Below are positions 2,624 through 21,026 of a stretch of DNA of 24,235 nt, piece by piece. Made by a program: the position numbers and the translations under genes. Source of the DNA: Utricularia gibba (taxonomy: Eukaryota > Plantae > Magnoliophyta); the NCBI GenBank assembly GCA_002189035.1, contig NEEC01000347.1, positions 1 through 24,235 of the forward strand. Reading direction: 5' to 3'. How positions within the stretch are numbered: position 1 is the stretch's first letter; each line of letters starts with the position of its first letter. Below the pieces are notes generated by a model that saw nothing but the letters and a program-made list of their open reading frames with translations, had not been told where the DNA came from and did not search any database.

Positions 2624-3062
2624 CCAGGGCCGGAAACGATGGGTCATTTTAGAAAAATTCTCATCTCATACGCAAAATAGTCATATAATATATTGACGTA
2701 AATTATTTGGAATTTACATGAATTACGTCAATATGAAACATTTGTTTCCGTTTCGGTTTCATACCTTGGCCGTGGGTGTAATGAGATAACACGAAATAAG
2801 ATTACATAAATTATATATGTAAATAATTAATAATTAAGTGAATTATCATATTTATCATGATATTATATGAATATAATGGTGATAGGGACTCTTGGGAATA
2901 ATATTATCATTTCAATATGTACATAATAAGATAATAAAATATAATTTTTCTTTTTACAGCGGGGCGTCTAAATTGTATAAAAGGAATACATCCCGTATAG
3001 TATAGAGTATTATAATTTAAATGTATTATACATTACATGCTCCTGTATTGTAATTTGTAGTT

Positions 3063-3343
3063 GGGACGGGAGAAAGAGCGATAAAGAGGTACAAGAAGGT
3101 CCTCCAAGGCGTCAAGTACAAATTCTTTTCAAATTTCTCATCAACAACATAATCCCTGTCATCACTTCTTTTCTACTAACCCTTCCACAAAACACAAACC
3201 TGAGTAGTTTCCTGTGCTCTGGATCTTCCTTACGTCCCTATTTGTATATTCAATTCTGCAAATTCTTGCAATCCCTTACTCGAGAAATCAACGCCCTTTT
3301 TTACGGTGCTGCTTCCGCGTCTGCTGCCTTTGCTCTCTTCGCG
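3063..3343 (+). pseudogene. Degraded 5' half of the small 4-TM family gene (left arm of fold-back)
   Basis: Encodes remnants FKFLINNIIPVITS, VLWIFLTSLFVYSILQILAI and FYGAASASAAFALFA, matching 13164-13707 and 17911-18430. It has indels and is truncated at TTCGCG (3343). Confidence 0.85.
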
Positions 3344-3753
3344 GCGGGGGCAGTGCCTCGATGTCAGAATCAGCTTCAGTTTCTCCGGCGGAGGAGATTC
3401 CAGTTATTCCAATTCGTTGCAACAATCAGAGGTATAGAGAGAGCAACAGCTGGAAAGAAAGAGAAACGCGTAGGCATGAAGAACGCGAAGAGGGCAAAGG
3501 GCAGCAGACGCGGAAGCAGCACCGTAAAAAAAGGATGCTGATTTCTCCCAAAATGATTGCAAGAATTGAATATACAAAAAGGGACGCCAGATCCAGCACA
3601 GGAGAACTACTCAGGTTCGTGCTTTGTGGAAGAAGGTCAGTAGAGAAAGAGTGGTGACCGGGATTACGTTGTTGATGAGAAATTTGAAAAGAATTTGTAC
3701 TTCACGCCTTGGAGGAGCTTCTTGTACCTCTCTATCGCTCTTTCTCCGGTCCC
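3063..3753. repeat. Long inverted repeat: arms 3063-3343 and ~3480-3753, ~135-nt loop
   Basis: Arms aligned by eye at roughly 85% identity. A perfect 35-bp stem starts at 3114-3148 (AAGTACAAATTCTTTTCAAATTTCTCATCAACAAC), and a ~30-bp perfect stem pairs 3299-3328 with 3499-3528. Confidence 0.9.
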
Positions 3754-3790
3754 TGATAGATAGCTGCTCCTTGTCGCCCTTCCTTCCCAT
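3344..3790 (-). pseudogene. Inverted, frameshifted copy of the small 4-TM gene with a different N-terminus (MGRKGDKEQLSIRDRRKSDREVQEAPPRREVQILFKFLINNVIPV...)
   Basis: The reverse complement matches the family through FMPTRFSF..ATNWNNWNLL..ETEADSDIEA. There is a candidate ATG at 3790-3788 and several indels. Confidence 0.85.
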
Positions 3791-3864
3791 CCCATGTTGG
3801 ATGGGGTAAATGATTGCAAGAATTTGCAGAATTGAGTACACAGCATTCTGTATAAAAAAGGGCC

Positions 3865-4035
3865 GCTGCTATGGTGTGATCGGAGCTGCGTTTCTTTTTA
3901 TCATGTATAAATTAACAGCCTTCCTTATACACTGAGTGAACGCGTCTTTGATGTATAATATTTTGTTCATTTTGTAATGTTTAATTTAAAAAATGTGGGC
4001 TTTGTGTACTATTTTTTTGGCAAAGAAAAGATAAT
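3865..4035 (+). repeat. 3' end and downstream flank of the 4-TM gene (remnant)
   Basis: GCTATGGTGTGATCGGAGCTG...TTATACACTGAGTGAACGCG...GATGTATAAT...TTTGTGTACTATTTTT aligns with 18418-18615. Confidence 0.8.
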
Positions 4036-4039
4036 TTTC

Positions 4040-4496
4040 GAATCATCGCACTCTTCTGTATCGGATGCTGAGGAGGATCCATCTCTGTCTCTGCCCCAGC
4101 CAACTTGTTCATCGCCGCTTCCGACGGCCAGACGAAACTGCTCCCTTACATCAGGAGCAACGATGCCGATCATCACACTTCACATTCACATCTATGGCCG
4201 TGAATACTACCTCCTGAGTGTTCTTCTTCGTGATCTACAGCCGTGCCATGGCAATGCGCCTCAGTTGCAATGGTTTCATACTAGAGGACTCTGAATCTTC
4301 TCTGCTGCTTGCACCACCGCCGCCTAACTGCAACTTATCTGCAACGCCTTCTGTCTTTTTATGGGCTGTTGATATATTTTCGTTCTCATCCACTGGATTC
4401 AAGTCAGCAGCTATTGATGTGCAGTCATAATTCTCTTCATCTTCTTCGAGTGTCCTTTGCATTGCCTTTAGTTGTTCCTGCTGCCTCACGAATAGC
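4040..4496 (-). pseudogene. Inverted duplicate of the FHA gene's last exon with ~440-bp internal deletion
   Basis: The reverse complement matches 8507-8835 (RQQEQLKAMQRTLEEDEENYDCTSIAA...) joined directly to 9277-9403, with the junction at 4173/4174. It also has small indels and begins mid-exon. Confidence 0.92.
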
Positions 4497-4661
4497 TATG
4501 TGACTAGAATGTGCTAAATTAATATACTTCCACAAACTACAATGGATTTGCACCTTTTTGTGGTACTGAATTGGTCAGTGAAGACACTTGGTTTGCCTTT
4601 TATTTTTTAAATGAGAAGATTCATTTTTTGAAGTTGAGTTGGATCTTGCACCATATGGCAG

Positions 4662-5055
4662 AATTCTGGCACTCTGTGCGAGTGGCCTATTATGATGGGA
4701 CTATATTCCATCCAAAAATTAAGGGCTTCATGATACAAGGTGGTGATCCCACTAACACTGGCAAGGGAGGAACAAGTATATATGGGGTAAAAAGTTCAGT
4801 GATGAGATAAAAGAATCTCTCAAGGCTAGTTTTTCTGTACTTTTTTGGTTTCATGAAAATCATACTATGCTAGTGATATGTTTCTTTTGAACAATCACTG
4901 ATGTTCTTCTACTTCATTGCGTATTACAGCACAATGCTCGAGGTATACTATCCATGGCTAACAGTGGCCCCAACACCAATGGAAGTCAGTTTTTCATAAC
5001 ACACGGCAAGGACTCTACACCATCTTCGGTAAAGTGATTCATGGATTTAAAGTTC
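4662..5055 (+). pseudogene. CYP18-1: Cyclophilin CYP18-1/PPIL3-type, internal exons only
   Basis: Exon 4662-4824 is ~[17 protein letters not shown](R>P)(N>K)[23 protein letters not shown]..., and exon 4930-5055 is [37 protein letters not shown]. Lesions are several frameshifts, a ~16-nt deletion (QPHLN), a GC donor at 4825, the catalytic Arg of FHR changed to Pro, and no 3' end. Confidence 0.92.
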
Positions 5056-5120
5056 AGTAAGGAACAGTGAACCGGTTTAATGACTGGCTTGTGAACCGGA
5101 GGACAAGCTATTCGATTTTT

Positions 5121-5186
5121 TGGGCTTTGAGTGGCTATATGTAAAAAAGCTCGTTTGTGGTAATTGGGCCTTACTACTGATGGGCT
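5121..5186 (+). promoter_or_regulatory. Three site II motifs (TGGGCY) upstream of the FHA gene
   Basis: TGGGCT 5121-5126, TGGGCC 5165-5170 and TGGGCT 5181-5186, ~190-250 nt upstream of ATG 5370. This is the typical TCP-bound proximal promoter cluster. Confidence 0.55.
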
Positions 5187-5369
5187 TGACGATCCACGTC
5201 AGTGAATAGTGAAAAGACAAGAAAATCCTCCACGCCCAGCTTCCTCGAGACGCTGGAACTGAGTGATACCGAAAAGCGCGGCCAACGGCACCTACATGCG
5301 GAGCCTATAGGTTTTATGAAATACGCGCCATTCCGGAATTGGAATCTAGTTGCAATACCTCCTGGCTCA

Positions 5370-8300
5370 ATGGCGAAGGTTAATGGAAGCCCGGCGTCAC
5401 AGGGGTCCTCTGGCGGGAGTCCGAACCCGGCGAGAGATCCTACTGCTCTCCCCCTTGCGAATTCGGCCAACGAACACTGTAAAGGCAACATCACCCCTGG
5501 GCCGGAAATTGGAGTCTCTGTGCCTCAGGAAACTGCCGCGGCATCGGAAGAGTTCATATCCTCTGTCGCTGCAATGGTAGCCGCTCAGCCGGTGCCGCCT
5601 TCGGATCTCAATGTTTGGGGCGTGCTCACAGCTATAACTGATAAGGCACGAAAGCGGAAACAGGTTTGTGAGTTTACCATTGGTTGTTTGTGAGTTTCAT
5701 TTCATTAGAATCTTGGATTTTGTGATTCACAAATGCTTCTTGCTTGGAGAAGCTTTCCTTCAGTAAACAGTACTGTTTTTTTTTTCTTTTTATTTCGGTA
5801 CCGATACATGACTTTTTATACAAGGGCGTTAATATGCTTCTGACATCGGATGAGCACTGCATTGGCCGGCTTGTGGATGATCCAAATTTCCGGATTATGT
5901 CACCTGCGGTTAGTGCTCGTCATTGCAAGATTACTAGAAAGCGAGTTACTACAAAAGATACAGAGGATCAATCTGGCTGCTGTTTTTCGGTATTCTTGAA
6001 GGATACGAGGTCAAAGATCCTTCATGCAGGTTGTGAATTATATTTTTTGTAATATACTGATGATTAATTGTTGTCTGCAGTACAAATGGTACGTATTGGA
6101 ACTGGGAAAAGCTGAGTAAAAGTGCCTCGGATGTAAAGCTGTGTCATGGAGACATTATCTCCATAGCATTTGCACCGCATCATGGTAAAGCCCATGCTTT
6201 TTAACTAAGAGTCTATATTAGTTCGATTTCAACTAAATAGCTCTGCAGCATAATGCACTAGAGTATTCTTAAATGAATCTTGCCTGTCCTGTTTTACAAA
6301 ACTTCATCAATTGCAGAGCTTGCATTTGCTTTTGTTTTTCGAGAAGTCAAGATGTCGTCAACCGTATCTCCTTGCAGGCTTTTAAAGCGAAAACCAGGTA
6401 CCCACATGTGTGTATCTTCTCTTTGGAATTGGTTGATGCGAGTTCTCGTAATCATGCATAAGGCAAGAACTAACTTTATAAGCGCATATTTCTCATTTTG
6501 TTTCAAGATGATTTTCCTGCTGAGAGCAAGAGACATAAGGGTCTCGGCATAGGCGCTTCTGATGGTCCGGTGTCTCTTGATGATTTTCGGAGCCTTCAAA
6601 GATCTAACACAGTAACTACTGCTTATACATGACTGTGACACTAGCATACCCCTTCGAAAATTTCATTCCTGTATATTCAAAATATTTGGTTGAAATCTTG
6701 CTGGATTCTCAACAAGTCATTCTATGTAGGATCTCCGGAAACTTCTGGAGGATAATGTTGCGACATTGAATCCCTACGAAAGGATAACCAAATAGCCAGT
6801 GAAAAGCATGAGATTGTATGTCTGCTTTTTCTTATGCACTTTTTTCTTTTACAGTTTCTAGACTATGAACTTGCCGTGAGTTTCATTTAAAAAACGAGAG
6901 TCGTTTTTCAACTATCTGGTTCTTGGACATTCACTTTTGTCTCATTCTATTTCCTTGTTTGTTTTCCTTTTGTAGGAAATGAAAAACTTGAAAGAATCAA
7001 CCTCAAAACTTTATGGATAAGCTATCTGAATTGACTCGAACATTGGAGGCACAAGATAAGGAGTTGATGGAGCTGAACAAAATCTCAGCTGACCAGAAGC
7101 ATGAAATAGACACCCTTAGTCAGCGGCTCGCTGCTTCTGTACAGTCATTTGTTGAAGCCAATGAAATAATGGAGTGGTACGTTGCTTGTTTAGAATTTCA
7201 GGTTGATATTGTCTTGCTTGGTCCTGTTTGTGTCTGATTTCATTAGTAGTACTTGTTCCAAGTCATTGTCAAGGTTCATGCGGAAGCCTGGATGAATTTT
7301 TCATATCCAGAATCACTTTCTTCAAAAGCATTATCATGAACTAATTTTTCGTCTTCAGAGGCTGGAATTATTTAGGATTCCTGATCTATGAATGTACACT
7401 TTTAAACATCTATCTCTTTTTCAGCCAAAAGAAGTCTATATCGCAACTCAAAGCACAATTAGATGAAGAACGTGATCTGAGAAGGGAGGAGCGAGAAAAG
7501 GCATCTGTGGATATGAAAATGGCACTACAGAAAGTCCAAGCGGAGGCTGAAGAGGAGCTAAAACGTAAGTCTGAGTGTGCACTGAAGCGAGAGAAGGAAC
7601 AACAAGATATCATACAGAAGCTTCAGGTTTTCTGGATTTCTCCATAAAATCATATGCGCTCGTTTTTCTCACAGATTCCTTGTTCTCATTTTTTTTAAAT
7701 TCAGGAATCCGAGAAAGAAAGGTGTCTATTGGTGGAAACTTTACGCTCAAAATTGGTATGAGATGATTTCCAATTTTAATTTCATCTGAACACGTTTCTT
7801 TGAATAATGCTCTCGGTACTAACCTTTTGTAGGAAGACACAAGAGAAAAACTGGTTAGCTCTGATAACAAAGTGCGGCATCTGGAGTCTCAGATTTCTCA
7901 GGAACGGGAAGCTAATGCTGTCAATAGAAAAGTATCTTGATTCTTTCTTCTTGCACCATATGTTTTTTACATTAAGATTTCTCGATATCCATTAGAACTT
8001 GTCTCTATGAACCCAGAAGCTTGAAGAACTTGAGCATGAGAGAACAAGACTGACTAAAAAACTTGAGAATGAAAAGGTACACTTTGCTGCTCGACATTTT
8101 ATAAAAGAGAGCTTAACATTGTTTTGATGTTGTGGTGCTTTAGATGTGCTTCAAACTATCTTCTTTCTAGAAATAATGGGTTGCAGATTTCGATCTGATT
8201 TTTTCTTGGTGCTGTAGCAGGCTGCTCGGGAAGAAGCTTGGGCTAAGGTGTCTGCTCTTGAACTCGAAATAACTGCTGCCATGCGTGATCTTGACTGTGA

Positions 8301-9417
8301 AAGACGCAGACTAAAAGCTGCCAAGGAAAGAATAATGCTGCGGTACGCATTGTGGGAAATACAAACCTCTTAAAGCTGATAGATAATTTCATACCATCTG
8401 CTTCCTTTGTTTTTAGTTGTAAATGCTTGAAATTCACTTCATGTCGACCCTGCTGCAGCGAAACTCAGCTTCGTGCTTTCTACTCAAGCACAGAGGAAAT
8501 ACAATTGCTATTCGTGAGGCAGCAGGAACAACTAAAGGCAATGCAAAGGACACTCGAAGAAGATGAAGAGAATTATGACTGCACATCAATAGCTGCTGAA
8601 TTGAATCCAGTGGATGAGAACGAAAATATATCAACAGCCCATAAAAAGACAGAAGGCGTTGCAGATAAGTTGCAGTTAGGCGGCGGTGGAGCAAGCAGCA
8701 GAGAAGATTCAGAGTCCTCAAGTGATGAAACCATTGCAACTGAGGCGCATAGCCATGATGCCACGGCTGTAGATCACGAAGAAGAAGACACTCAGGAGGT
8801 AGTATTCACGACCATAGATGTGAATATGAAGTGTGCTTTTGACGTTAACGCCGTTGGAACAGAGCTGATACCCGAGACGGAGGGTGTAGGCACAGCCAGG
8901 ATCCATGAAACTGAGCATGTCTCGGAGACGCAGAGCCAGGGACGTGGCATCGACACCACACAGTTGGAATGCAAGATGGATGTAGACAAACACCCGCCAC
9001 AGATGAGTGCCGTGTGAGTCATGGAGAAGCTAACCCTGAGGCGTCTGGAGCTCAGGATCTGAGAGAATGTGCTCATGGAACAGCAGACCTCTTGGCATCA
9101 GAAGTAGCCGGCAGCTGGGCCTGCAGCACTGCACCTTCAGCCCTTGGGGAAAACGAGTCTGGAGAAGCAAAGATCACGACGCGGGTGATCCCACTGCTTC
9201 CGAGAGTCGGAATGTTGCACCCTCCCATGTTAGAGCTTGTGCGCGAAGAAATCATGAGCGCCGGGCATTGAGCGAGATGATCGGCATCGTTGCTCCTGAT
9301 GTAAGGGAACAGTTTCGTCTGGCCGTCGAAAGCGGCTATGAACAAGTTGGCTCGGGCGGGGATGGATCCTTGTCTGCTTCCGATACAGAAGACTGCGATG
9401 ATTCCAATGAAGGATGA
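5370..9417 (+). CDS. SMAD/FHA-domain coiled-coil protein (Arabidopsis At2g45460-like)
   Basis: Exons: 5370-5663, 5825-6009, 6081-6184, 6317-6397, 6508-6611, 6730-6815, 6976-7176, 7425-7626, 7705-7755, 7833-7931, 8017-8076, 8221-8342, 8459-9417. Motifs VWGVLTAI, LLTSDEHCIGR, DTSTNGT, GLGIGASDGPVSLDDFRSLQRSN, AAREEAWAKVSALELE, ETQLRAFYSST, LLASEVAGSWACSTAPS, ALSEMIGIVAPD. Apparent homopolymer losses at ~6765, ~7005-7012 (2 nt), ~8990 and ~9163. An alternative in-frame ATG is at 5316. Confidence 0.9.
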
Positions 9418-9439
9418 TGGATGATCACGATATGAATCC

Positions 9440-9570
9440 CTTCTCTGGTTTCCCCACGACCACAATCACCACCCGTTTTAAACATTTCCCTTTTTTAACA
9501 ACCTTTTTTTCCCAAAATTATCTTTTCGTTTCCAACATTATTCCTCAAAAATAATACACAAAATTCCTCA
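9440..9570 (-). repeat. Inverted copy of the 4-TM/VAP27 intergenic flank element
   Basis: The reverse complement aligns with 10500-10625 and 18550-18680, and it is colinear with 12960-13075. It directly follows the FHA stop codon. Confidence 0.75.
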
Positions 9571-9817
9571 TTTCACCAGGCACCACCACATCCTCATCAA
9601 CTTCTCCGTCCCAGCTCAAACCTTCCCCGGGACAGTCCCCGCCACCATATTCTCCGATTCCACGACCTCCAAGATGGAGAAGCAGATTGAGATTTTCAAA
9701 TTTCTCACCAAATCCATATTCCCCGTCTCGACTTCTCTTCTCCCCACCCTTGTACACGACAAGACGAACCTGAACAGTGCTCCTGTGCTGTAGATCTTCC
9801 TCACGTCTCTCTTTGTG
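9567..9817 (+). pseudogene. 5' fragment of 4-TM exon 2
   Basis: It keeps the acceptor TTCACCAG, then HHHILINFSVPAQTFPGTVPATIFSDSTTSKMEKQIEIFKF.... A TGG>TAG stop lies at 9791-9793, it is truncated at 9817, and it has no exon 1. Confidence 0.88.
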
Positions 9818-9879
9818 GAAACGAAACAAATCTCTCTGTTCACTTCAGTTAGTTCAGTTTCTTGTGAAACGAAACGAAA

Positions 9880-10404
9880 ATGAAATCCCTCATTTCACCT
9901 CATCAACTTCTCCGTGCCAGGCCAGACCGTCCCGCGACAGTCTACGCCACCATCTTCCGATTCTACGAGCTCCAAGACGGAGAAGCTGGTGGAGATTTTC
10001 AAATTTCTCATCAAAAACATAATCCCCGTCACGACGTCTTTACTCTAAGCCTTCTACACGACAAGACGAACCTGAGTAGTGTTCCTGTGCTGTGGATCTT
10101 CCTCACGTCTCTCTTCGTGTATTCAACTCTACACATTCTCGCCATCATTTACCCTCACAGGAGAAACGGGTGCCTTTTTTACGGTGCTGCTTCCGCCTCT
10201 GCTGCCATTGCTCTCTTCGCGTTCCTCGCGTTCTTCATGCCTACGCGTTTCTCTTTCATTCCAGCTGCTGCTCTCTCTATTGCTGTGATTGTTGCAGCGA
10301 ATTGGGATAACTGGAATCTCCTCCGCCGCGACTCCACCGGAGAAACTGAAGCTGATTCCGACATCGAGGCGCCACCTCCGCCGCCAAGTCTACAGACGGT
10401 GTGA
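9880..10404 (+). pseudogene. 4-TM family copy A: rearranged, 174-aa open frame from an intron-derived ATG
   Basis: The C-terminal ~110 aa match the family (HDKTNLSSVPVLWIFLTSLFVY...ANWDNWNLLRRDS). A 13-nt deletion removes the splice acceptor, there are further 1-, 2- and 1-nt losses, and exon 1 is absent upstream. Confidence 0.7.
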
Positions 10405-10716
10405 TCGGAGGTGCTTGTCTTTTTATCATCAAGGTCTGTTTATACGTTCAGTGTTATATGATCAATTGTACCTATTGTAACGATTAACTACAAATTATGA
10501 ATGGAGTTTTTGTGTATTATTTTTGAGGAATAATGGTGGAAAAGAAAATATAATTTTGGAAAAAGATTGTTAAAGAAGGGCAATGTTTAAAAGGGGAGAT
10601 TCTGGTGGTTGGAAAACCAGATCTCCTCTTCCTGTTCTGTTATTTCTCTCGAATTGTGCGCCGGGATCCGCCACCGCTGCCGGAAAAGTCATTTTTTCGT
10701 CAATTTTCTGTCAGAA

Positions 10717-11902
10717 ATGAGTAACGGAGAGCTTCTTCAAATCGAACCGCTCGAGCTTCAATTTCCTTGTGATTTCTTTCTCTTGTTTTTTTCCTTTGCC
10801 GTGGGCTTCTTTTTTTTTTTTTTTTTTTTGAAGTTTTGATTGTCGATTTGGAAGGATTCTTGTTTCGTGTTCAGTTTCGATATCTGTCGATTTTACTCGG
10901 TTGTCTGCCTTCTGGGCTTTGAATTTTCTTCCACGCGTCTAATTTTTTTTTTATCCAATTCTTTTTCCTTGGTGCGTTGAAAGTCGAATTGAAGAAGCAG
11001 ATCTCGTGTTCCCTGCAATTGATCAACAAATCGGATAATTATGTTGCATTCAAGGTATATGCTGCTGCTTCCTTCCTCAAGTTACGATTTTCAGCGTATT
11101 ATCCCTACGGTCAGACATGAGAAAATGTAAAGGAAGAGGAATTTTGCAATGCATTGTGTAGTATCTCCGTTTGATGATGATTGATGAACACGTTCCAGGT
11201 GAAAACAACTAACCCCAAAAAGTATTGCGTGACACCGAATACGGGAGTCGTCATTCCTCACTCTACATGTGATGTTGCAGGTAATGGATTTTTATTTCAT
11301 CCTTCCGCTTTTGCCTAAGAGGAACGCAGGACTCGGGGTGTATTCCACTCCGCAGTGCTAGTAATTTATGGTTTTCTGATTCATAATTTATGCCCTTCAG
11401 TTACAATGCAAGCACAAAAGGAGGCTCCTCCAGACATGCAGTGCAAGGATAAATTCCTCCTCCAGAGTGTCGTAGCTAGCCCTGGATCAACAGTAAAGGA
11501 TATTACTGCAGAAATGGCGTGTGGCTTGTCAGTGACCCTGATAAGTTGATTAGAGATGCGGGTTGATGTCCAAAAAAAAATGTTCTTTGACAAATGTTTA
11601 TGTCTTTTATCAGTTCAACAAAGAGTCTGGAAATCATGTTGATGAGAACAAGTTGAGAGTTGTGTATGTTCTCCACCTCCAAGGCCACCTTCTCCAGTTT
11701 ATGAGGGAGTGGAGGAAGGCTCAGACAATGGGGCAGCCTATCAGTATTCTGATTCTAATGCTGTGAGTCCTGGGATCTTTTCCTATCAGTATTGTACAAT
11801 TTTTAAATGTCATCAGTTTTGCAATGCATCACAATCTTCCCATCTCTTTTATAATTGCAGATGTTTAAAGCATTGGGTGAACAGAAGGGGACTACAACTG
11901 AG
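10717..11902 (+). pseudogene. VAP27: VAP27 copy A, truncated and frameshifted
   Basis: Exons 10717-10768, 10984-11054, 11199-11280, 11401-11516, from 11614, and 11861-11902. Relative to copy C it has YCVRP>YCVTP, a GT>GC donor at 11517, a 2-nt non-homopolymer insertion (GTTCTCCA vs GTTCCA), a 21-nt deletion in exon 5, and no exons 7-8 (coiled coil, TM anchor). Confidence 0.92.
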
Positions 11903-12170
11903 GTTACATCTGATACTATGATAGTGTTATTTCGAAGTTGCCTTAAAATTGAAAAATCCTTTTCTACTGGGGTTATAAGGAAGATGTTTTTATGTTCTCA
12001 TTATCTTAGCGAAAGCAGGAAAATAAATCTTGAGTTAATTCTACACAAGATGTTAGTAGGGATTCTCTTGTCCTGGTGGACTTCATTATCAAATATAATC
12101 GATGTTTTATGAAGAGTGGTATTGCTTTCTTGAGATGCTTTGTGCTGCTAATATTTCAAGGGCTACGTTA

Positions 12171-12275
12171 CTTGACATCTCCCAAGTTTGTGTGGAGCGT
12201 CACCGCCTTGGGTGACCCAAATTGTTCGTGCAGCCAAAAACAGGATACATAATCAAGACTGAAAAATCGAAACAT
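12171..12275 (-). pseudogene. CYP18-1: 5' piece of CYP18-1/PPIL3-type cyclophilin
   Basis: After acceptor CCCAAG, 12206-12171 encodes AVTLHTNLGDVK (cf. the CYP18-1 N-terminus MSVTLHTNLGDIK), then breaks into VAP27 intron sequence. A candidate ATG micro-exon at 12275-12273 is inferred. Confidence 0.85.
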
Positions 12276-12399
12276 GCACCGACCTGTTCGACTGAACTCC
12301 CCACTCGCCGGAAAATAAAACTGGCATCCGTACCCACCGGACCTCGTCGAATTAACCTTGAAATAACAAGCTCCTGATTTGAAACGTTGAAAAGTAGTC

Positions 12400-12408
12400 A
12401 AACCCTAA
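12400..12408 (+). promoter_or_regulatory. Telo-box AAACCCTAA in the orphaned cyclophilin 5' region
   Basis: Exact AAACCCTAA ~130 nt upstream of the candidate CYP ATG on the minus strand. Confidence 0.5.
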
Positions 12409-12475
12409 ATTAAAATATCCAATGCACATTATTTATTTTTAAATAAATAACAAAAATTGCAACACCCAAAGTAAT

Positions 12476-12563
12476 GGGCATTGAGCGAGATGAACGAATA
12501 TCGTTGCTCCTGATGTAAGGGAACAGTTTCGTCTGGGCGTCGAAAGCGGCGATGAACAAGTTG
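12476..12563 (+). pseudogene. Second duplicate fragment of the FHA last exon (ALSEMIGIVAPDVREQF region)
   Basis: GGGCATTGAGCGAGATGA...TCGTTGCTCCTGATGTAAGGGAACAGTTTCGTCTGG.CGTCGAAAGCGGC.ATGAACAAGTTG matches 9263-9349. Confidence 0.9.
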
Positions 12564-12620
12564 CCTTTTCGTTCACAACATCATTCCTCAAAAATAATAC
12601 ACAAAAACTCCATTCATAAT

Positions 12621-12844
12621 TATCGGATTTGTTGATCAGTTGCAGGAAACACCAAGGAAAAAGAAGTTGATTAAAAAATTAGAAGGTAAACAACCAAATA
12701 AAGTTGGAAGAATTCTTCCAAATCGACAATCAAAACTTAGGAAAAAAAAACCCACGGCAAGGGATACAAAAATAAGAGGAGAAGGAAATTTCTAGGAAAG
12801 TGAAGCTGGAGCGGTTCGATCTGGAGGAGCCCTCCGTTACTCAT
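12621..12844 (-). pseudogene. VAP27: VAP27 copy B, inverted 5' fragment
   Basis: Exon 1 at 12844-12793 reads MSNGGLLQIEPLQLHFP with the donor mutated to GA. It is followed by a deleted intron 1 and a 32-nt piece of exon 2 (12652-12621, ~SCSLQLINKSD). Confidence 0.88.
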
Positions 12845-13163
12845 TTTGTGACTGTGAGAGATTCGTGGACAGAGAATTGACGAAAACAACGACTTTTCCG
12901 GCTGCGGTAGCGGATACCGTCTCGCAATTCGAGAGAAATAACGGAGAGGGAAGAAAAGAAAAGATCTGGTTTCCCCTACGGCCACAATCGCCCGTTTTAA
13001 ATATTGCCTTTTTTAAACAACCTTTTTTTTCCAAAATTATTCCTCAAAAAATAGTACACAAAAATTCCATTCATAATTTTTAATTAAACATTACAAAATG
13101 ATACAAAATATTATACATCAAACACGCGTTCACACAGTGTACAATGCTCTTAACAGTGTTGTT

Positions 13164-13837
13164 TTATATACGATAAAAAGAAAAGCAGCTTCGATCACAC
13201 ACCATCAGTAGCCTGCGCGGCGGTGGTGGTGCCACGATGTCGGGATTAGTTTCAGTTTCTCCGGCGGAGTCACGGCGGAGGAGATTCCAGTTATCCCAAT
13301 TCGCTACAACAATCAGAGCAATAGAGAGAGAAACTGCTGGAATGAAAGAGAAACGCGTAGGCATGAAAAACGCGAGGAACGCAAAGAGAGCAAAGGCAGC
13401 GGAGGCGGAAGCAGCAGCGTAAAAAAGGCGCCCGTTTCTCCTCTGAGGGTAAATGATGGCGAGAATGTGTAGAGTTGAATACACAAAGAGAGACGTCAGG
13501 AAGATCTGTTGCACACCGTTCAGGTTCGTCTTGTCGCGTACAAGTGTTAGGAGAAATATCGCGACGGGGATGATGGTTTTGGTGAGAAATTTAAAAATCT
13601 CCATCAGCTTCTCCGTCTTGGAGCTCGTAGTATCGGAGAAGATGGTGGCGTGGACTATCGCGGGGGAAGGTTCGGCCTGCACGGAGAAGTTGATGAAGAT
13701 GTGGTGCCTGGTGAAATGGGGGATGTCATTTTCGTTTCACACAGAAACTGAGCTAACTGTAAGTGATCAGAAACATACCTTGCCGCGAACGAGGGTTCCG
13801 CCGAGCCATAACCGCGTGCGTTCTGGAAAGCGGCCAT
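13164..13837 (-). CDS. Uncharacterised small 4-TM protein, copy B (intact, two exons, 200 aa)
   Basis: complement(join(13164..13707,13779..13837)). Exon 1 is MAAFQNARGYGSAEPSFAA, followed by a 71-nt GT-AG intron (GTATGT...TTCACCAG) and exon 2 R-HHIFINFSVQAEPSPAIVHATIF.... There are four hydrophobic segments. TATA lies ~40 nt upstream. An extra TG near 13200 reads through the family stop, adding 11 aa. Confidence 0.8.
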
Positions 13838-13871
13838 TGTCGGATGAGGATTGCTTCCTGGAGGGCGGGGG

Positions 13872-13880
13872 GATTTATAA
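13872..13880 (-). promoter_or_regulatory. TATA box of 4-TM copy B
   Basis: The minus strand reads CTTATAAATC ~40 nt 5' of ATG 13837; an equivalent TATA precedes copy C. Confidence 0.55.
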
Positions 13881-15295
13881 GGACCATTGAGGAAATTAGC
13901 CGATTTATTCAACCAGTGACGCATACGATCAACCTGTGACGCCTAATACCTTTCGATTTCACATCCACATTTTATTTCAACAAATAATGAAAAGTCTTTT
14001 TGGAGAAATCTTTTGTCTTATTAAACACCTTTTGATTTGACATCCTCATCTTTTTTCAATAAATAATGCATCCTCATCTTAGAACCTGTGAGAAAAAGCA
14101 TCATCTTAATCGTAGTAAACACTCTTTTTTTTTTTTTGGAGAAAAGTTAATACACCACTTAAACTATAATCTTCACTTATTTAAAGAGAGCGGCATTCAT
14201 ATGAGTTAAATAATTATTTATACTCAAATTTACCAATTAAAATTTTTTGTCTTTTTTTTTAAAAAAAATTGAAATCATCATTGCTTTCGTCATTAATTTA
14301 TTCAACATAAAAGAATAAATTTTAGGACTACTTTATACATAAAGTGAAGAATAAGTTAATGGTAAAAATACGGTCAAAATGTTAAAATAATAAATTCAAA
14401 TAGAAAGTTTACATTTTTGGAATGTACAAGAATTACGTCAATACACATAAAACCAATCATATGATTAATAATTGTATTTTTTGGAATTATTTAATTTTTA
14501 TAATAACTTAGGACCATATTTGTAGTTTTAATAAAAATAATAATAAAATAAAGATACTCACCGTGTTTGTACCTGTGGCTATGTTTTGCAACCATTTTCA
14601 TTCTCAAAATGAGAAATTACCAGTTTTGCAAAACAGACATGTTTTCATTTTTTAAAATGAAAATTTTTATAAAAAAATAAATGAAAAATGATACTCATTC
14701 TAACATGATCGTTTTTCTAATAATATCATTATTTCATTTTTTTATTTTTATAATTTGGTGAATTAAAATTTATTTTTTTTATGTAAATTCTTATTTTAAT
14801 ATTGATTTCTCATTTTGTAATACAACATATTTTCATTATGTAATCTTTTTTTAAAGTTACATAACAACAATTTATTTCATTTATCATTCTTATTTAGTTT
14901 ATACCTTATTGGTTTCCGTGCGGTCGTCCCCGACGGTGTACGAGACGTGGGACCCCTATCGCCCCAAGAAAAATTTCTGCACCTAACATCCATTAATGTT
15001 GTGACGGTGGATTGGAATCATGACATTTCACCAAAACTAAAAAAAGTGAATATTAATAAAAAATATATTATATTAAGTCTAGGATGTATTTGTTAAGATT
15101 TAGTTCAGGAACTTTTATTATTAGCTATTACAAACTATGTATTATCAAAATATCACTCAATCATAACATATGAATAAAATTATTTATTTTCAAATTGAAG
15201 AACATGGAGTGTTTTTTATATAAATAGAAATCACTCTAATACATCATTAAAATTTATTTCTTAAATTGAATGCAAACTTGAAAGAAGTTTATTCA

Positions 15296-15494
15296 AGGAT
15301 AGGATAGGATAGGATAAAATCAGCGTTCCAATGCGGGGCCCTTTCTTTTAGTGGACCCCAACCAACTCCTCCAACCGTTGGAGTCCAACGTGGAAACAAA
15401 ATGGCGAGGGCAAGTCACTGTTGATCATCGGGGCCCATAACTTCTCGAACTAATCAACGCCACTTAAGTGGATCCTTTCTTTTAGTGGACCCCA
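15296..15494. repeat. (AGGAT)4 followed by a 21-bp direct repeat pair and a 15-bp palindrome
   Basis: AGGAT x4 at 15296-15315; CCTTTCTTTTAGTGGACCCCA at 15340-15360 and 15474-15494; CTCCAAC-C-GTTGGAG at 15369-15383. Confidence 0.85.
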
Positions 15495-15750
15495 CGCAAC
15501 CCCTCCAAGTTATTAATGTAAAATAATACATAAGATTGTTTATTGACATCTAAATTCATGAAAAATAAATAATTAAATAAACATAATTTAATATTTTAAT
15601 AACATTATCTATTTACCAAAGCAAAATAGAGGAGTACATCTATTTAACCAATTTTTTATCCACGTCATCTATTTTGGTTTTCAAAATATAGAGCCGCGTG
15701 AGGCTACGCAGTCCGACGTCACTCCTGGTCATCTGGCCCCACAGTAGCAC

Positions 15751-15811
15751 CTTGGGAGCCGAACCAGGGTTCCGCCATGCCGTAGCCCCGTGCGTTCTGG
15801 AAGGCGGCCAT
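15751..15811 (-). pseudogene. Orphan exon 1 of the 4-TM family
   Basis: ATG GCC GCC TTC CAG AAC GCA CGG GGC TAC GGC ATG GCG GAA CCC TGG TTC GGC TCC CAA G|GT encodes MAAFQNARGYGMAEPWFGSQ, matching 13837-13779 and 17766-17824. No exon 2 follows. Confidence 0.85.
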
Positions 15812-17507
15812 TCGGCGGGAAGGGGTAACATAGTGGGCAAGGCGGCCCAATCATCTACGGATCTATCTTTTTGTCCAATTTCTCGGTATGGAATTGTAAG
15901 GTTTTATGGTGTTCTAAACAGTATTCGAATTCTGATATTGGGACAGATTGAACTCTTCTATTCAATTATCCTCGTGTTCCTATATCTCTTCTCCCCTTAC
16001 CTGCATCTGCATCTGTCAGCGCGGGCATTTATCAAATAGGATTATTTACACAATTTTACAAATAACACAAACCTATCATTTTACTTGGGATTATTTACAC
16101 AATTTTCATGTTTGAAATTGATTCTCGTTTTCACTTAATTGCACTCGTTCACATTCAATGAACAATCACACCCAATAACAATAAGGACATGGCACTGATA
16201 AAACTCAGTAATATAACATTCAGTAATATACTTCAAAAGTGGAACATCTCATAACACCCGATCAAACCTTACAATCCATTTAAAAATAAGAACAAATTGT
16301 TGCAATCTCTTAGAAACTGTAACACCCTTCAAAAACCACTTGAAATTCCAAAAAATGGACAATGAATTTGTTAAAAATAATAGTTATCACTTTTGTGAAT
16401 TAGATGCACAAGAATCGATGATATGTTGTATAAATAGTTTATAAATGCATCAAACATAAGTAATGATAATGCATGAATCGTAAAGAATGTTACACCACAT
16501 TCACTAGGATAAAAAGCAAACTTGTTAATGTTCCATTTCAGGTAAACATGTACAATAAACAATTGATTAAATTACCAAATAAAAAAAATTACAGAGTTGA
16601 AGTATGTTACTGAAGAGGAATTGGATGTAAGGAGATCAACACACAAAGTGTAACGTCTACCAGATTACGCATATTCATTAGTCAAGCAAATTGTTGCAGA
16701 TTTCTTTAATAGTAAAAGGTTTTCTTGTGAATATACACACGTTGATTAAGGAAGCATCCTGGATATCACCCAAAATGGAGTTCCCTTTAACGTATAAGTC
16801 AACGCAAAGTGAGAGTCGAAAAAATTGGACGCGATTTTAATAAAGGTTGAGGGTTGGTGCAGAGTGGACAACAAACATTAAAATTCGTAATGCATATTAT
16901 AAAGTTTCATGACATTCTCCTTATTTTAATGAATGATATCACGATATTGTAAACAAATTTGGGCCAATTTCCTATCATATTTAAAAAAGAATTGCATATT
17001 CGTGATTGTATATTGTTTGTGAATACCATAAGAAAAATTATACTATTATATTATATTATAAAATATCCATTAAATATAATGCTATTTTTGGGTTTAGCCA
17101 CGCCCAATCTACAATTATATCTCTCCCATAAAATTGATTGGGCCTCCTCTGTTTTTTAAATTTTTAATTCAAATTATGTAGAATATAGTCAGTTTTAAAA
17201 TTATATGAATAGAATTGATTTAAGATTGTAAAATTATTTTATAAGATAACATAAAATTATATTGATTTTAATAAAATAAAAGATATATTATAAAATTTAA
17301 TATATTAAATTATTGTATAATTTAATATTATAATATAAATGTATTTTTAGAATAGATAAAAATTGAATAATATAATTTTTAGAATTAATCTCTTATTTAA
17401 TCTTTAAAATAAAAATTCAATAAATTTAATAATTTCTAAAATTAATTATAAGATTTAAATTTCTAATTTTAGAATCTTAAGAAATTAAATATAGTTCCTT
17501 CAAAAAA

Positions 17508-17616
17508 TTTATAACACAAAACCGAACCATGGTTAGAAATATAATTTCAAAATTGAGTGCCTGGAACACGGTTTATAACACAAAACCGAACCATGGTTAG
17601 AAATATAATTTCAAAA
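17508..17616. repeat. Perfect 45-bp direct repeat (period 64 bp) upstream of 4-TM copy C
   Basis: TTTATAACACAAAACCGAACCATGGTTAGAAATATAATTTCAAAA at 17508-17552 and 17572-17616, plus a third partial AAAACCGAACCACGGTT to ~17630. Confidence 0.9.
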
Positions 17617-17728
17617 CCGAACCACGGTTTGGCTGCCTGTGTGGAAAAAGTGGGCCCTCTGTGTACAATTACCGAAATAGCCAAGAAATGATCAGCCTCC
17701 TGATCGTGATTCCTGAATCCCCCCCTCT

Positions 17729-17737
17729 TATATAAAT
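17729..17737 (+). promoter_or_regulatory. TATA box of 4-TM copy C
   Basis: TATATAAAT ~30 nt before ATG 17766, followed by a pyrimidine-rich stretch. A GTGGGCCC TCP-type site lies at ~17650. Confidence 0.55.
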
Positions 17738-17765
17738 ATCCTCCTCCCCTCTTACATAAACCGGA

Positions 17766-18430
17766 ATGGCTGCTTACCAGGACGCACGCGGCTAAGGCAC
17801 GGCGGAACCCTCGTTCGCGCCAAGGTATGAAACCGAAACAATTGTTCCTGTTCACTTACAGTTAGCTCAGTATCTTTGTGAAACGACAATGAAATTCTTC
17901 ATGTCACCAGGCACCACATCCTCATCAATTTCTCCGTGCCAGGCCAAACCTTCGCCGGGACAGTCCACGCCACCATCTTCTCCGATTCTACGACCTCCAT
18001 GACGGAGAAGCTGATTGAGATTTTCAAATTTCTCACCAAATCCATATTCCCCGTCGCGACTTCTCTTCTCCTCACCTTTCTACACGACAAGACGAACCTG
18101 AACAGTGTTCCTGTGCTGTGGATCTTCCTCACGTCTCTCTTTGTGTATTCAACTCTACACATTCTCACCATCATTTACCCCCACTGGAAAAAAGAGCGCC
18201 TTTTTTACGGAGCTGCTTCCGCCTCTGCTGCCTTTGCTCTCTTCGCGTTCCTCGCGTTCTTCATGCCTACGCGTTTCTCTTTCATTCCAGCTGTTGTTCT
18301 CTCTATTGCTCTGATTGTTGCAGTGAATTGGGATAACTGGAATCTCCTTCGCCGCGACTCCGCCGGAGAAACTGAAGCTAATTCCGACATCCAGGCACCG
18401 CCGCCGCCGCGCAGGCTACTGATGGTGTGA
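17766..18430 (+). CDS. Uncharacterised small 4-TM protein, copy C (exon 1 stop; in-frame restart at 17999, 143 aa)
   Basis: join(17766..17824,17911..18430) with an 86-nt GT-AG intron. TAA at codon 10 (17793-17795). The next ATG in the spliced mRNA is 17999, in frame, and precedes all four hydrophobic segments. Confidence 0.7.
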
Positions 18431-18773
18431 TCGGAGCTGTGGTTTTCTTTTTATCATAAATAAATTAACGACTGTTAACAGCCTTATACACTGAGAGTGA
18501 ACGCGTGTTTGATGTATAATATCTACCATTTCGCAATGTTTAACTACAAATTATGAATGGAGTTTTTGTGTATTATTTTTCAGGAATAATGTTGCAAAAG
18601 AAAATATAATTTTGGAAAAAGGTTGTTAAAAAAAAGCAATGTTTAAAAGGGGAGATTCTGGTGGTTGGAAAACCAGATCTCTTCTTCCTGTTCTGTTATT
18701 TCTCTCGAATTGTGCGCCGGGATCCGCCACCGCTGCCGGAAAAAGTCATTTTTTCGTCAATTTTCTGTCAGAA

Positions 18774-20697
18774 ATGAGTAACGGAGAGCTTCTCCAGATC
18801 GAACCGCTCGAGCTTCAATTTCCTTGTAATTTCTTTCCCTTGTTTTTTTATACCTCGCCGTGGGTTTTTTTTTTTTTTTTTTGAAGTTTTGATTGCCGAT
18901 TTGGAAGGATTCTTGTTTCGTGTTCATTTTCGATATCTGCCGATTTTATTCGGTTGTCTGCCTTCTGGGCTTTGAATTTTCTTCCACGCGTCTAATTTTT
19001 TTTTATCCAATTCTTTTTCCTTGGTGTGTTGAAAGTCGAATTGAAGAAGCAGATCTCGTGTTCCCTGCAATTGATCAACAAATCGGATAATTATGTTGCA
19101 TTCAAGGTATCATGCTGCTGCTTCCTTCCTCAATGTTATGATTTTCAGCGTATTATCCCTACGGTCAGACGTGAGATAATGTAAAGGAGGAATTTTGCGA
19201 TGACATTGTGTAGTATCTCCGTTTCATGATGATTTGATGAACCCGTTCCAGGTGAAAACAACTAACCCCAAAAAGTATTGCGTGAGACCGAATACGGGAG
19301 TCGTCATTCCTCACTCTACATGTGATGTTGTAGGTAATGGATTTTTATTTCATCCTTCCGCTTTCGCCTAAGAGGAACGGAGGACTCGCGGTGTATTCCG
19401 ATCCGCAGTGCTAGTAATTTATGGTTTTCTGATTCATAATTTATGCCCTTCAGTTACAATGCAAGCACAAAAGGAGGCTCCTCCAGACATGCAGTGCAAG
19501 GATAAATTTCTCCTCCAGAGTGTCGTAGCTAGCCCTGGATCAACAGTAAAGGATATTACTGCAGAAATGGTGTGTGGCTTGTCAGTGACCTTGATAAGTT
19601 GATTAGAGTTGCGGGTTGATGTTAAAAAAAAAAATGTTCTTTGACCAGTGTTTACATCTTTTATCAGTTCAACAAAGAGTCTGGAAACCATGTTGATGAG
19701 AACAAGTTGAGAGTTGTGTATGTTCCACCTCCAAGGCCACCTTCTCCAGTTTATGAGGGAGTGGAGGAAGGCTCCTCACCGCGTGACTCTGTGTCGGACA
19801 ATGGGGCAGCCTATCAATATTCTGATTCTAATGCTGTGAGTCGTGGGATCTTTTATTTGTTTGAATGGATTGTACAATTCTTAAATGTCATCAGTTTTGT
19901 AATGCATCACAATCTTCCCATCTCTTTTATTATTGCAGATGTTTAAAGCATTGGGTGAACAGAAGGAAACCACAACTGAGGTTAAGTCTGATACTATGAT
20001 AGTGTTATTTCGAAGTTGCCTTAAAATTGAAAAATCCTTTTCTTCTGGTACTATAAAGAAGATGTTTTTATGTTCTCATTATCTAAGCGAAAGCAGGAAA
20101 ATAAACCTTGAATTAATTCTATAGAAAAACACAAGATGTTAGCTAGAGATTCTCTTGCATCTCATGCAACCTGGTGGACTTCATTATCAAATATAATCGA
20201 TGTTTTATGAAGAGTTGTATTGCTTTCTTGAGATGCTTTGTGCTGCTAATATTTCAAGGGCCACATTACTTGATTCAAAGACTGGGTAATGCGCTAAGCA
20301 CTATGTAGAGGGAGACATAGAAAGAGTCAAGTTGGATGATAATTTCTCCTATTTTTCTGGTGAACGCTGAAGGGTCTTTTCCTCATCATTGTGTCGTTTC
20401 TCCCCCAAATTGCAGGGTCAGTCCTTGGTTTCCAACCTGACAGAGGAGAAGAGATCTGCTCTCCAGCTTAATCAGAAGCTCGAGCGGGAATTGGTAAGCA
20501 TTTCAGGATCATCCCAACAGCTTCTGAAATCTCAGTTTTCCCCATCCTCTTGTTCAATAACTTACCACACGGGGCATCATACCCCGCAGGAGGTGCTGAG
20601 GCGTCAAACCCGGAAAAGCAACGGCATTCCAGTCATCTATCTTGTGGTGGCCGCCCTGGCGGGTGTTTTGTTGGGGTACATCCTCAAGAGAGTGTGA
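18774..20697 (+). CDS. VAP27: Vesicle-associated protein VAP27 (MSP domain, coiled coil, C-terminal TM), intact, 238 aa
   Basis: Exons 18774-18825, 19036-19106, 19252-19333, 19454-19569, 19668-19835, 19939-19980, 20416-20493, 20590-20697 sum to 717 nt with consistent phases. Motifs FKVKTTNPKKYCVRPN, MQCKDKFLLQ, KLRVVYVPPPRPPSP and GVLLGYILKRV. Confidence 0.96.
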
Positions 20698-21026
20698 GTG
20701 GTTTGAGACAGAAGTTAGAGCTATTTTTCCCGCAGAAGACTGATCAAGTTTTTAGCCGTCTGTTTTGTGGTAGAAAGCATTGAGCGTCGTGCTTTGATTC
20801 TGCGGCGTGGTGATGATGCTATCCATTGCTGCTTCATTCATTATTAGTACCGTCTGCTGCTTGTTACTCTCCCCACCTGCCTTTGAAATTAACTTATTTT
20901 GGAGTTTAATTATCCACTAATCATGCAAGTTTTTCTCGGGTACTCCTAATAATAATAAGAGATTGTTTGATAATAGTATACATTCGGAGTAATATTTTTA
21001 TACTAAAATATCAAACATACTCTAAG

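Follow-up and report, generated by a model that had tools for sequence, protein, structure and literature searches.

A possible young two-exon membrane-protein reading frame, copied by local rearrangement beside a VAP gene of Utricularia gibba

The subject of this study is a two-exon open reading frame (ORF) with four hydrophobic, putatively transmembrane (TM) segments, here called the 4-TM ORF, several pieces of which occur in a stretch of 24,235 nucleotides (nt) from Utricularia gibba (assembly GCA_002189035.1, contig NEEC01000347.1, positions 1 to 24,235; hereafter the window). The chances are about even that this ORF is a young, taxonomically restricted gene (an orphan or proto-gene) located immediately 5' of a VAP27-type gene. 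Its copying would have been passive, a consequence of local segmental duplications, inversions and fold-backs in which the VAP gene and parts of a gene encoding an FHA-domain protein were copied as well, and most of the copies would now be decaying: copy A and the debris at 3063-4013 would be decayed remains, copy C would be a transcribed copy with a nonsense codon in exon 1 and copy B alone would retain the full 200-codon frame. The product, if translated, would be a four-pass membrane protein. The ORF is a possible young orphan gene, and it is not proven that its copies constitute a family.

The copies were counted by blastn, with the copy-B unit as the query against the whole window, and from repeat tables. 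Matches to the copy-B unit were located at 3126-3343(+), 3690-3337(-), 9563-9817(+), 9835-10427(+), 13900-13050(-), 15812-15760(-) and 17765-18577(+). An earlier note on this DNA, made from the letters alone, had listed seven pieces of one ORF in both orientations, and all seven were recovered; three extra scraps found by blastn, which are included in Table 1, were absent from it. The repeated sequence in the window is real. One copy (B) is complete, and even this copy overruns the ancestral stop codon by way of a 2-nt insertion.

The model of copy B in the earlier note (a 59-nt exon 1, a 71-nt GT-AG intron, a phase 2 junction, four hydrophobic segments and a tail) holds at the sequence level. 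Exon 1 joined to exon 2 gives a predicted product of 200 amino acids, with hydrophobic segments at residues of about 57-76, 87-106, 114-133 and 139-157 (four Kyte–Doolittle windows of at least 1.6), an RRxxR loop that joins segments 2 and 3, and a tail that reads NWDNWNLLRRDS..ETE..PPPP. According to the positive-inside rule, the RRxxR loop would be cytosolic, so that both termini, including the acidic and proline-rich tail, would be cytosolic as well. The intron contains an in-frame TGA about 31 nt 5' of the acceptor, because of which the full frame of copy B requires splicing. The derived changes of this copy comprise a compensated -1/+1 frameshift that altered four residues (AEPS; GQTF in copy C), a deletion of 6 nt in loop 1 and the 2-nt insertion, which lies right before the ancestral TGA, bypasses this stop and adds 11 residues.

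Copy C was described in the earlier note as also joining exon 1 to the TM exon in frame. The two-exon GT-AG layout is indeed common to B and C, but the frame of C is broken at codon 10, since its exon 1 reads ATG GCT GCT TAC CAG GAC GCA CGC GGC TAA, with TAT as codon 10 in B. An internal ATG in exon 2 of copy C (..STTSMTEKL..), ahead of the first hydrophobic segment, was considered as the true start, which would rescue this copy; an internal ATG in this region is differently placed in B and C, and there is none in A. Copy A is a 303-bp internal tandem duplication (9563-10427), both units of which begin within the intron and lack exon 1. Deletions of 1, 2 and 1 nt scramble the frame of its second unit up to the first hydrophobic segment, and this unit is in frame from the second segment through the tail. 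The 3063-4013 cluster is scrambled debris, consisting of a fold-back of two divergent copies riddled with insertions and deletions (indels), together with two scraps; the inverted repeat within the fold-back itself carries its arms out to 3063 and 3753.

Transcription was examined by mapping RNA contigs of four runs on 13000-18600; three of these runs (X8, X9 and X2) belong to one study and X1 to another, and the contigs are unstranded. Exon 2 of copy C is covered at 17930-18384 by contigs that are 100% identical in X8, X9 and X2, with a word depth of about 4-6, as well as by C-like X1 contigs of 56 and 232 nt, the longer of which runs 133 nt beyond the stop. Copy B is matched by a 99-nt exact piece in X2 and by a 364-nt X1 contig (13346-13709) that is 97% identical and differs at 10 letters and by two 1-nt gaps. 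The AT-rich spacer between B and C (3.9 kb) has zero depth in all runs except for one 51-nt X1 repeat match (14139-14189), and the signal therefore represents RNA and not contaminating DNA. With regard to expression, for which the earlier note had proposed a check, at least exon 2 of both C and B is transcribed. The X1 contig of copy B ends at 13709, the edge of the acceptor, a point at which an assembly graph would branch between the spliced and the unspliced form, and this end is at most suggestive of splicing.

The product is an orphan among the proteins searched. In a Pfam search of the window ORFs, the best matches of the 4-TM ORF reached 10.7-12.4 bits (E 0.13-0.49) against cut-offs of 27-37, and no domain was found by Pfam in its alternative and antisense frames. 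The earlier note, which recognized no Pfam family, is borne out, and the same result extends to a word-indexed search of 5.8 billion proteins, in which nothing scored, and to an exhaustive phmmer search of 1.84 billion representatives, which returned two matches, both repeat or low-complexity artefacts, and no plant protein. Metagenome scans by peptide pattern (contigs) and by an exact 32-nt core of the DNA were empty, exact-product look-ups of two contig-sized ORF pieces returned nothing, and a search of the window against Rfam likewise returned nothing. A language-model atlas scored the product at 0.85 (B) and 0.69 (C) against an unnamed plant cluster, values below the useful recognition range.

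Membrane-spanning de novo ORFs emerge from pyrimidine-rich or T-rich DNA (PMC7005711), and the sense strand of the 4-TM ORF, which is 60% pyrimidine (C+T), fits this published route. Orphan and de novo membrane ORFs (PMC7005711), as well as plant lineage-specific genes (PMC10020141), share with the present ORF a lack of detectable relatives, a short length, few exons, low expression, weak constraint and hydrophobic segments encoded on a pyrimidine-rich strand. However, at 200 codons and four segments, this ORF is longer than typical proto-genes. A de novo origin is a candidate, by analogy rather than by orthology.

The copies are embedded in larger rearranged blocks. A direct repeat (9584-12175 versus 17912-20273, 88-99% identity) spans the ORF and most of the VAP gene, and an inverted repeat block at 12730-13838 holds copy B and VAP sequence. 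Located 3' of copy B on the minus strand are an inverted VAP exon 1 (12985-12737), VAP exon-2-like sequence and an antisense FHA scrap. The VAP pseudogene that was duplicated jointly with copy A is frameshifted after ..RVVYV, has a 23-nt gap and is devoid of the C-terminal membrane-anchor exons. Beside the 4-TM debris, inverted fragments of the 3' part of the FHA gene (4088-4499 versus 8504-8723 and 9271-9362) are up to 98% identical to their parent, which indicates very recent rearrangement. Because the copies lie inside larger VAP-bearing blocks, their number is a by-product of local structural rearrangement, which is not peculiar to this ORF. The earlier description of a family under rapid birth-and-death therefore gives way to that of copies that ride in larger blocks with VAP, near inverted FHA fragments, with one full frame left. 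The window resembles the mosaics of local segmental duplication, inversion and fold-back of compact plant genomes in its direct and inverted blocks of 0.1-2.6 kb (72-99% identity) and in its junctions within genes, with truncated VAP and 4-TM pseudogenes amid inverted FHA fragments; there is nothing unusual in this version, which is the ordinary part of the finding.

Both B and C have a TATA-like motif before the ATG. TATAAAT is located at 13879-13873, 42 nt ahead of the ATG of copy B, and TATATAAATA at 17729-17738, 37 nt ahead of that of copy C. The placement of exon 1 behind a TATA box in the earlier note stands to this extent, but the motifs are not evidence of a conserved promoter, and no significant similarity was seen among the regions upstream of B, of C and of the solo exon-1 copy; their local alignment scores are within the shuffled range, and promoter homology among the three was rejected on these scores. 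In all three exon-1 copies (13838, 15812 and 17765) the homology begins a few bases before the ATG, with a common ..CCGA-AATGG.., which represents either an oddly coincident breakpoint or very fast divergence of the promoters.

Constraint on the ORF is probably weak at best, judging from its substitution pattern. Between B and C, the rate of synonymous change (dS) is 0.19, the rate of non-synonymous change (dN) is 0.11 and dN/dS is 0.58, with 17, 19 and 24 differences at the three codon positions. When changes were polarized by the majority among A, B and C, the synonymous and non-synonymous counts were 12 and 21 on the B branch (dN/dS 0.59), 6 and 15 on the C branch (0.84) and 5 and 18 on the A branch (1.2). 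This order would fit B as the most constrained copy, without a significant difference from 1. The earlier note had named ratios near 1 as speaking against its proposal, and the observed ratios come close to this, none of them being significantly below 1. The B–C identity is 88% in exon 1, 86% in the intron, 85% before TM1, 86% in TM1, 90% across TM2-TM4, 92% in the tail and 78-88% in the 3' flank. Some hints of constraint come from X1. In its B-like allele, the frame is held over 120 codons with five synonymous and four non-synonymous differences, and the stretch shifted in B is present in an ancestral, uncompensated-looking version. Compared with copy C, X1 has no listed differences in the coding tail and five in the 3' untranslated region (UTR). 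As selection is weak or absent, at most one or two copies would be functional and the family would not be evolving adaptively.

Several results weigh against a young gene. There is no contig on exon 1 or across either predicted junction in the four runs mapped on 13000-18600. If transcription started about 30 nt downstream of the TATA-like motifs, which are just ~37-42 nt 5' of the ATGs, almost no leader would remain. The dN/dS values span 0.58-1.2 without any being significantly below 1, the exons (85-92%) are not clearly better kept than the intron (86%) or the 3' flank, and in the A/C blocks the ORF is 88-94% identical, compared with 90-99% for the adjacent VAP DNA. Simulated neutral substitution keeps both frames open with P ~0.36, and open frames were rejected as evidence of selection on this basis. 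The AlphaFold model is poor, with a predicted local distance difference test (pLDDT) value of 46 from a three-row alignment, and the helices predicted at the hydrophobic segments are of low confidence. The term orphan denotes the lack of a relative among annotated or predicted proteins, and wherever the gene occurs it is evidently without annotation. In sum, the analysis shows the copies with their lesions, the want of relatives and the transcription of exon 2, and splicing, translation, topology and any function are inferred.

The foremost rival, which appears somewhat unlikely, is that the ORF is a non-functional relic, either a pyrimidine-rich stretch that is open by chance or a dead gene whose origin is lost. 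No copy would make a working protein, and the low-level RNA would perhaps come from the VAP promoter region, as an upstream or read-through product. In favour of this explanation are the near-neutral dN/dS, the roughly equal preservation of exon and intron, the possibility that the frames stayed open by chance, the stop at codon 10 in the very copy that neighbours the intact VAP gene, the terminal frameshift of copy B, the low RNA depth, the absence of relatives and the low recognition score in the atlas. However, the intact copy B has the lowest ratio of the branches and the pseudogene A the highest, synonymous differences slightly outnumber non-synonymous differences in the X1 B-like allele, and the -1/+1 shift of copy B is compensated within 15 nt. 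Furthermore, both B and C preserve consensus GT-AG sites and an identical splice phase, and the differences between X1 and copy C are listed in the 3' UTR and not in the coding tail.

If copies B and/or C of the putative young gene are translated, the compact genome of this plant would offer a clean, datable case of a membrane-protein gene of recent origin, for which the decayed copies serve as internal neutral controls; the fold-back could become a regulator, and the locus would be useful for studies of the birth and loss of orphan genes. If they are not translated, the locus is a caution that a frame of 170-200 codons, tidy splice sites included, can stay open in several young duplicates in the absence of selection, and that local rearrangement suffices to produce a 'family'. 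Knowledge of the nearby housekeeping genes is unaffected by either outcome.

More far-reaching roles can be proposed for the same sequences. It is improbable that B and C code for a novel four-pass membrane protein, confined to the lineage and with a role in the cell or in defence that is possibly executor-like, while the nearby fold-back, built from the same sequence, regulates it through small RNA, the two forming a self-contained module of young gene and silencer. Inverted duplication is a route to new MIRNA-like loci. That the fold-back at 3063-3790, and perhaps also the head-to-head pair of B and C, acts as a hairpin or small-RNA regulator of the remaining copies is highly improbable when taken by itself. 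If transcribed, the two ORF copies at 3050-3770 would form a very stable, near-perfect long hairpin (-436 kcal/mol, z = -33), and a fold-back of ~700 nt from two inverted ORF copies is shared with inverted-duplication proto-MIRNA loci. However, the arms here have diverged by ~28% from the intact copies, the resulting ~72% identity to B and C is poor for targeting by small interfering RNA (siRNA), and fold-backs often arise passively when DNA is rearranged.

The executor R proteins of plants were offered in the earlier note as an architectural analogy. Group-2 executor R proteins are short proteins with multiple TM segments and have no relatives outside close species (PMC4542534). A working lineage-specific family of four-pass membrane proteins of the executor (cell-death) or defence type, with copy turnover driven by selection, would agree with the small size, the four hydrophobic segments, the acidic residues in the tail and the fast change in the N-terminal half, and it has only a very slim chance of being correct. 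XA10, XA23, Bs4C-R and XA27 (PMC4542534) resemble the predicted product in being short, with multiple predicted helices, some acidic residues in the tail and no outside relatives. In contrast, they comprise 113-164 amino acids compared with 200 here, and no sequence similarity to them or to anything else was found, the presence of these proteins in the phmmer library being unchecked. The tail here (..RRDSAGETETNPDIVAPPPP..) has scattered acidic residues without a run of five such as that in the ED motif of XA10 and XA23 (PMC4542534). In addition, low-level transcripts in four ordinary RNA runs, without any known transcription activator-like (TAL) effector, argue against strict silence, the state expected of executor genes until such an effector binds an element of their promoter, dN/dS is not above 1 on the intact copy, and block rearrangements with other genes account for the copy number. 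The short multi-helix form survives from this comparison, which remains an analogy.

Capture and spread of a gene fragment by a transposon (a Pack-MULE, Helitron or similar) is scarcely credible. Such a vehicle might be suggested by the numerous pieces on either strand, interspersed with pieces of other genes, and by the onset of homology a few bases from the ATG in all three exon-1 copies. However, the intron is retained in the copies, VAP DNA adjoins them without a break, and none of the frames yielded a domain or a parent gene. The repeat tables of the window contain no terminal inverted repeats flanking the ORF clusters, for which reason this vehicle was rejected.

Table 1. Pieces of the 4-TM ORF and associated VAP sequences in the window.
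Feature	Position	Strand	Remarks
Fragment F1	3063..3343	+	Divergent (~72% identity); from before the first to the third hydrophobic segment; left arm of the fold-back
Fragment F2	3344..3790	-	Divergent; begins ahead of the first hydrophobic segment and reaches the PPP tail; many non-triplet indels; right arm of the fold-back
Scrap, second hydrophobic segment	3804..3842	-	blastn
Scrap with stop codon and 3' flank	3874..4013	+	blastn
Copy A unit 1	9563..9817	+	3' end of the intron and 5' half of exon 2; cut off at 9817, with a TAG at 9791-9793; piece of a pseudogene
Copy A unit 2	9835..10427	+	Intron remnant and exon 2; acceptor and 13 nt deleted; pseudogene
VAP (MSP-domain) pseudogene	10609..12175	+	Frameshifted, truncated; duplicated jointly with copy A
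3'-flank scrap	12593..12621	-	29 nt, blastn; within a transcribed chimeric VAP-like remnant
Copy B exon 2	13164..13707	-	Four hydrophobic segments and acidic/Pro tail; TAA at 13164
Copy B intron	13708..13778	-	71 nt, GTATG...ACCAG; phase 2 junction
Copy B exon 1	13779..13837	-	59 nt; ATG at 13837; codes MAAFQNARGYGSAEPSFAA + 2 nt
Solo exon-1 copy	15751..15812	-	MAAFQNARGYGMAEPWFG..; GT follows; no exon 2 downstream
Copy C exon 1	17766..17824	+	In-frame TAA at 17793-17795, codon 10
Copy C intron	17825..17910	+	86 nt, GT..AG
Copy C exon 2	17911..18430	+	Open 172-codon frame to the ancestral stop; transcribed
VAP gene, apparently intact	18639..20700	+	Directly 3' of copy C; ATG near 18774

The housekeeping neighbours were identified by exon-sized Pfam hits to cyclophilin (4571-4807), an FHA-domain gene (~5200-9465), the MSP/VAP genes and a CDP-diacylglycerol synthase gene starting from 21761; the scores of the FHA, MSP and cytidylyltransferase fragments fall slightly below the Pfam gathering cut-offs. 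The position of the ORF pieces among conserved housekeeping genes, as given in the earlier note, is thereby recovered, and the gene order around the ORF is FHA gene, 4-TM ORF, VAP and CDP-diacylglycerol synthase.

Contigs of 376-769 nt from X2, X8 and X9 exactly match a chimera at 12546-12651(-), extending towards 12985, that lies downstream of copy B. In this chimera, VAP exon-2-like sequence (12651-12622) is followed by 46 nt from the 3' flank of the 4-TM ORF and then by antisense FHA sequence (12575-12546), and these exact contigs therefore indicate that the VAP copy, truncated and rearranged as it is, gives rise to a fusion RNA. The X1 contig that matches the spacer at 14139-14189 is 644 nt long with a word depth of 108; only 51 nt match and the rest is unrelated sequence. 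A dispersed repeat, or else a transcript of high abundance that shares a short element with the spacer, is its probable source. A 60-nt AT-rich repeat (2674-2733 versus 14384-14443, 72% identity) is present in both of the AT-rich stretches that flank the ORF clusters and may be the remnant of a small mobile element.

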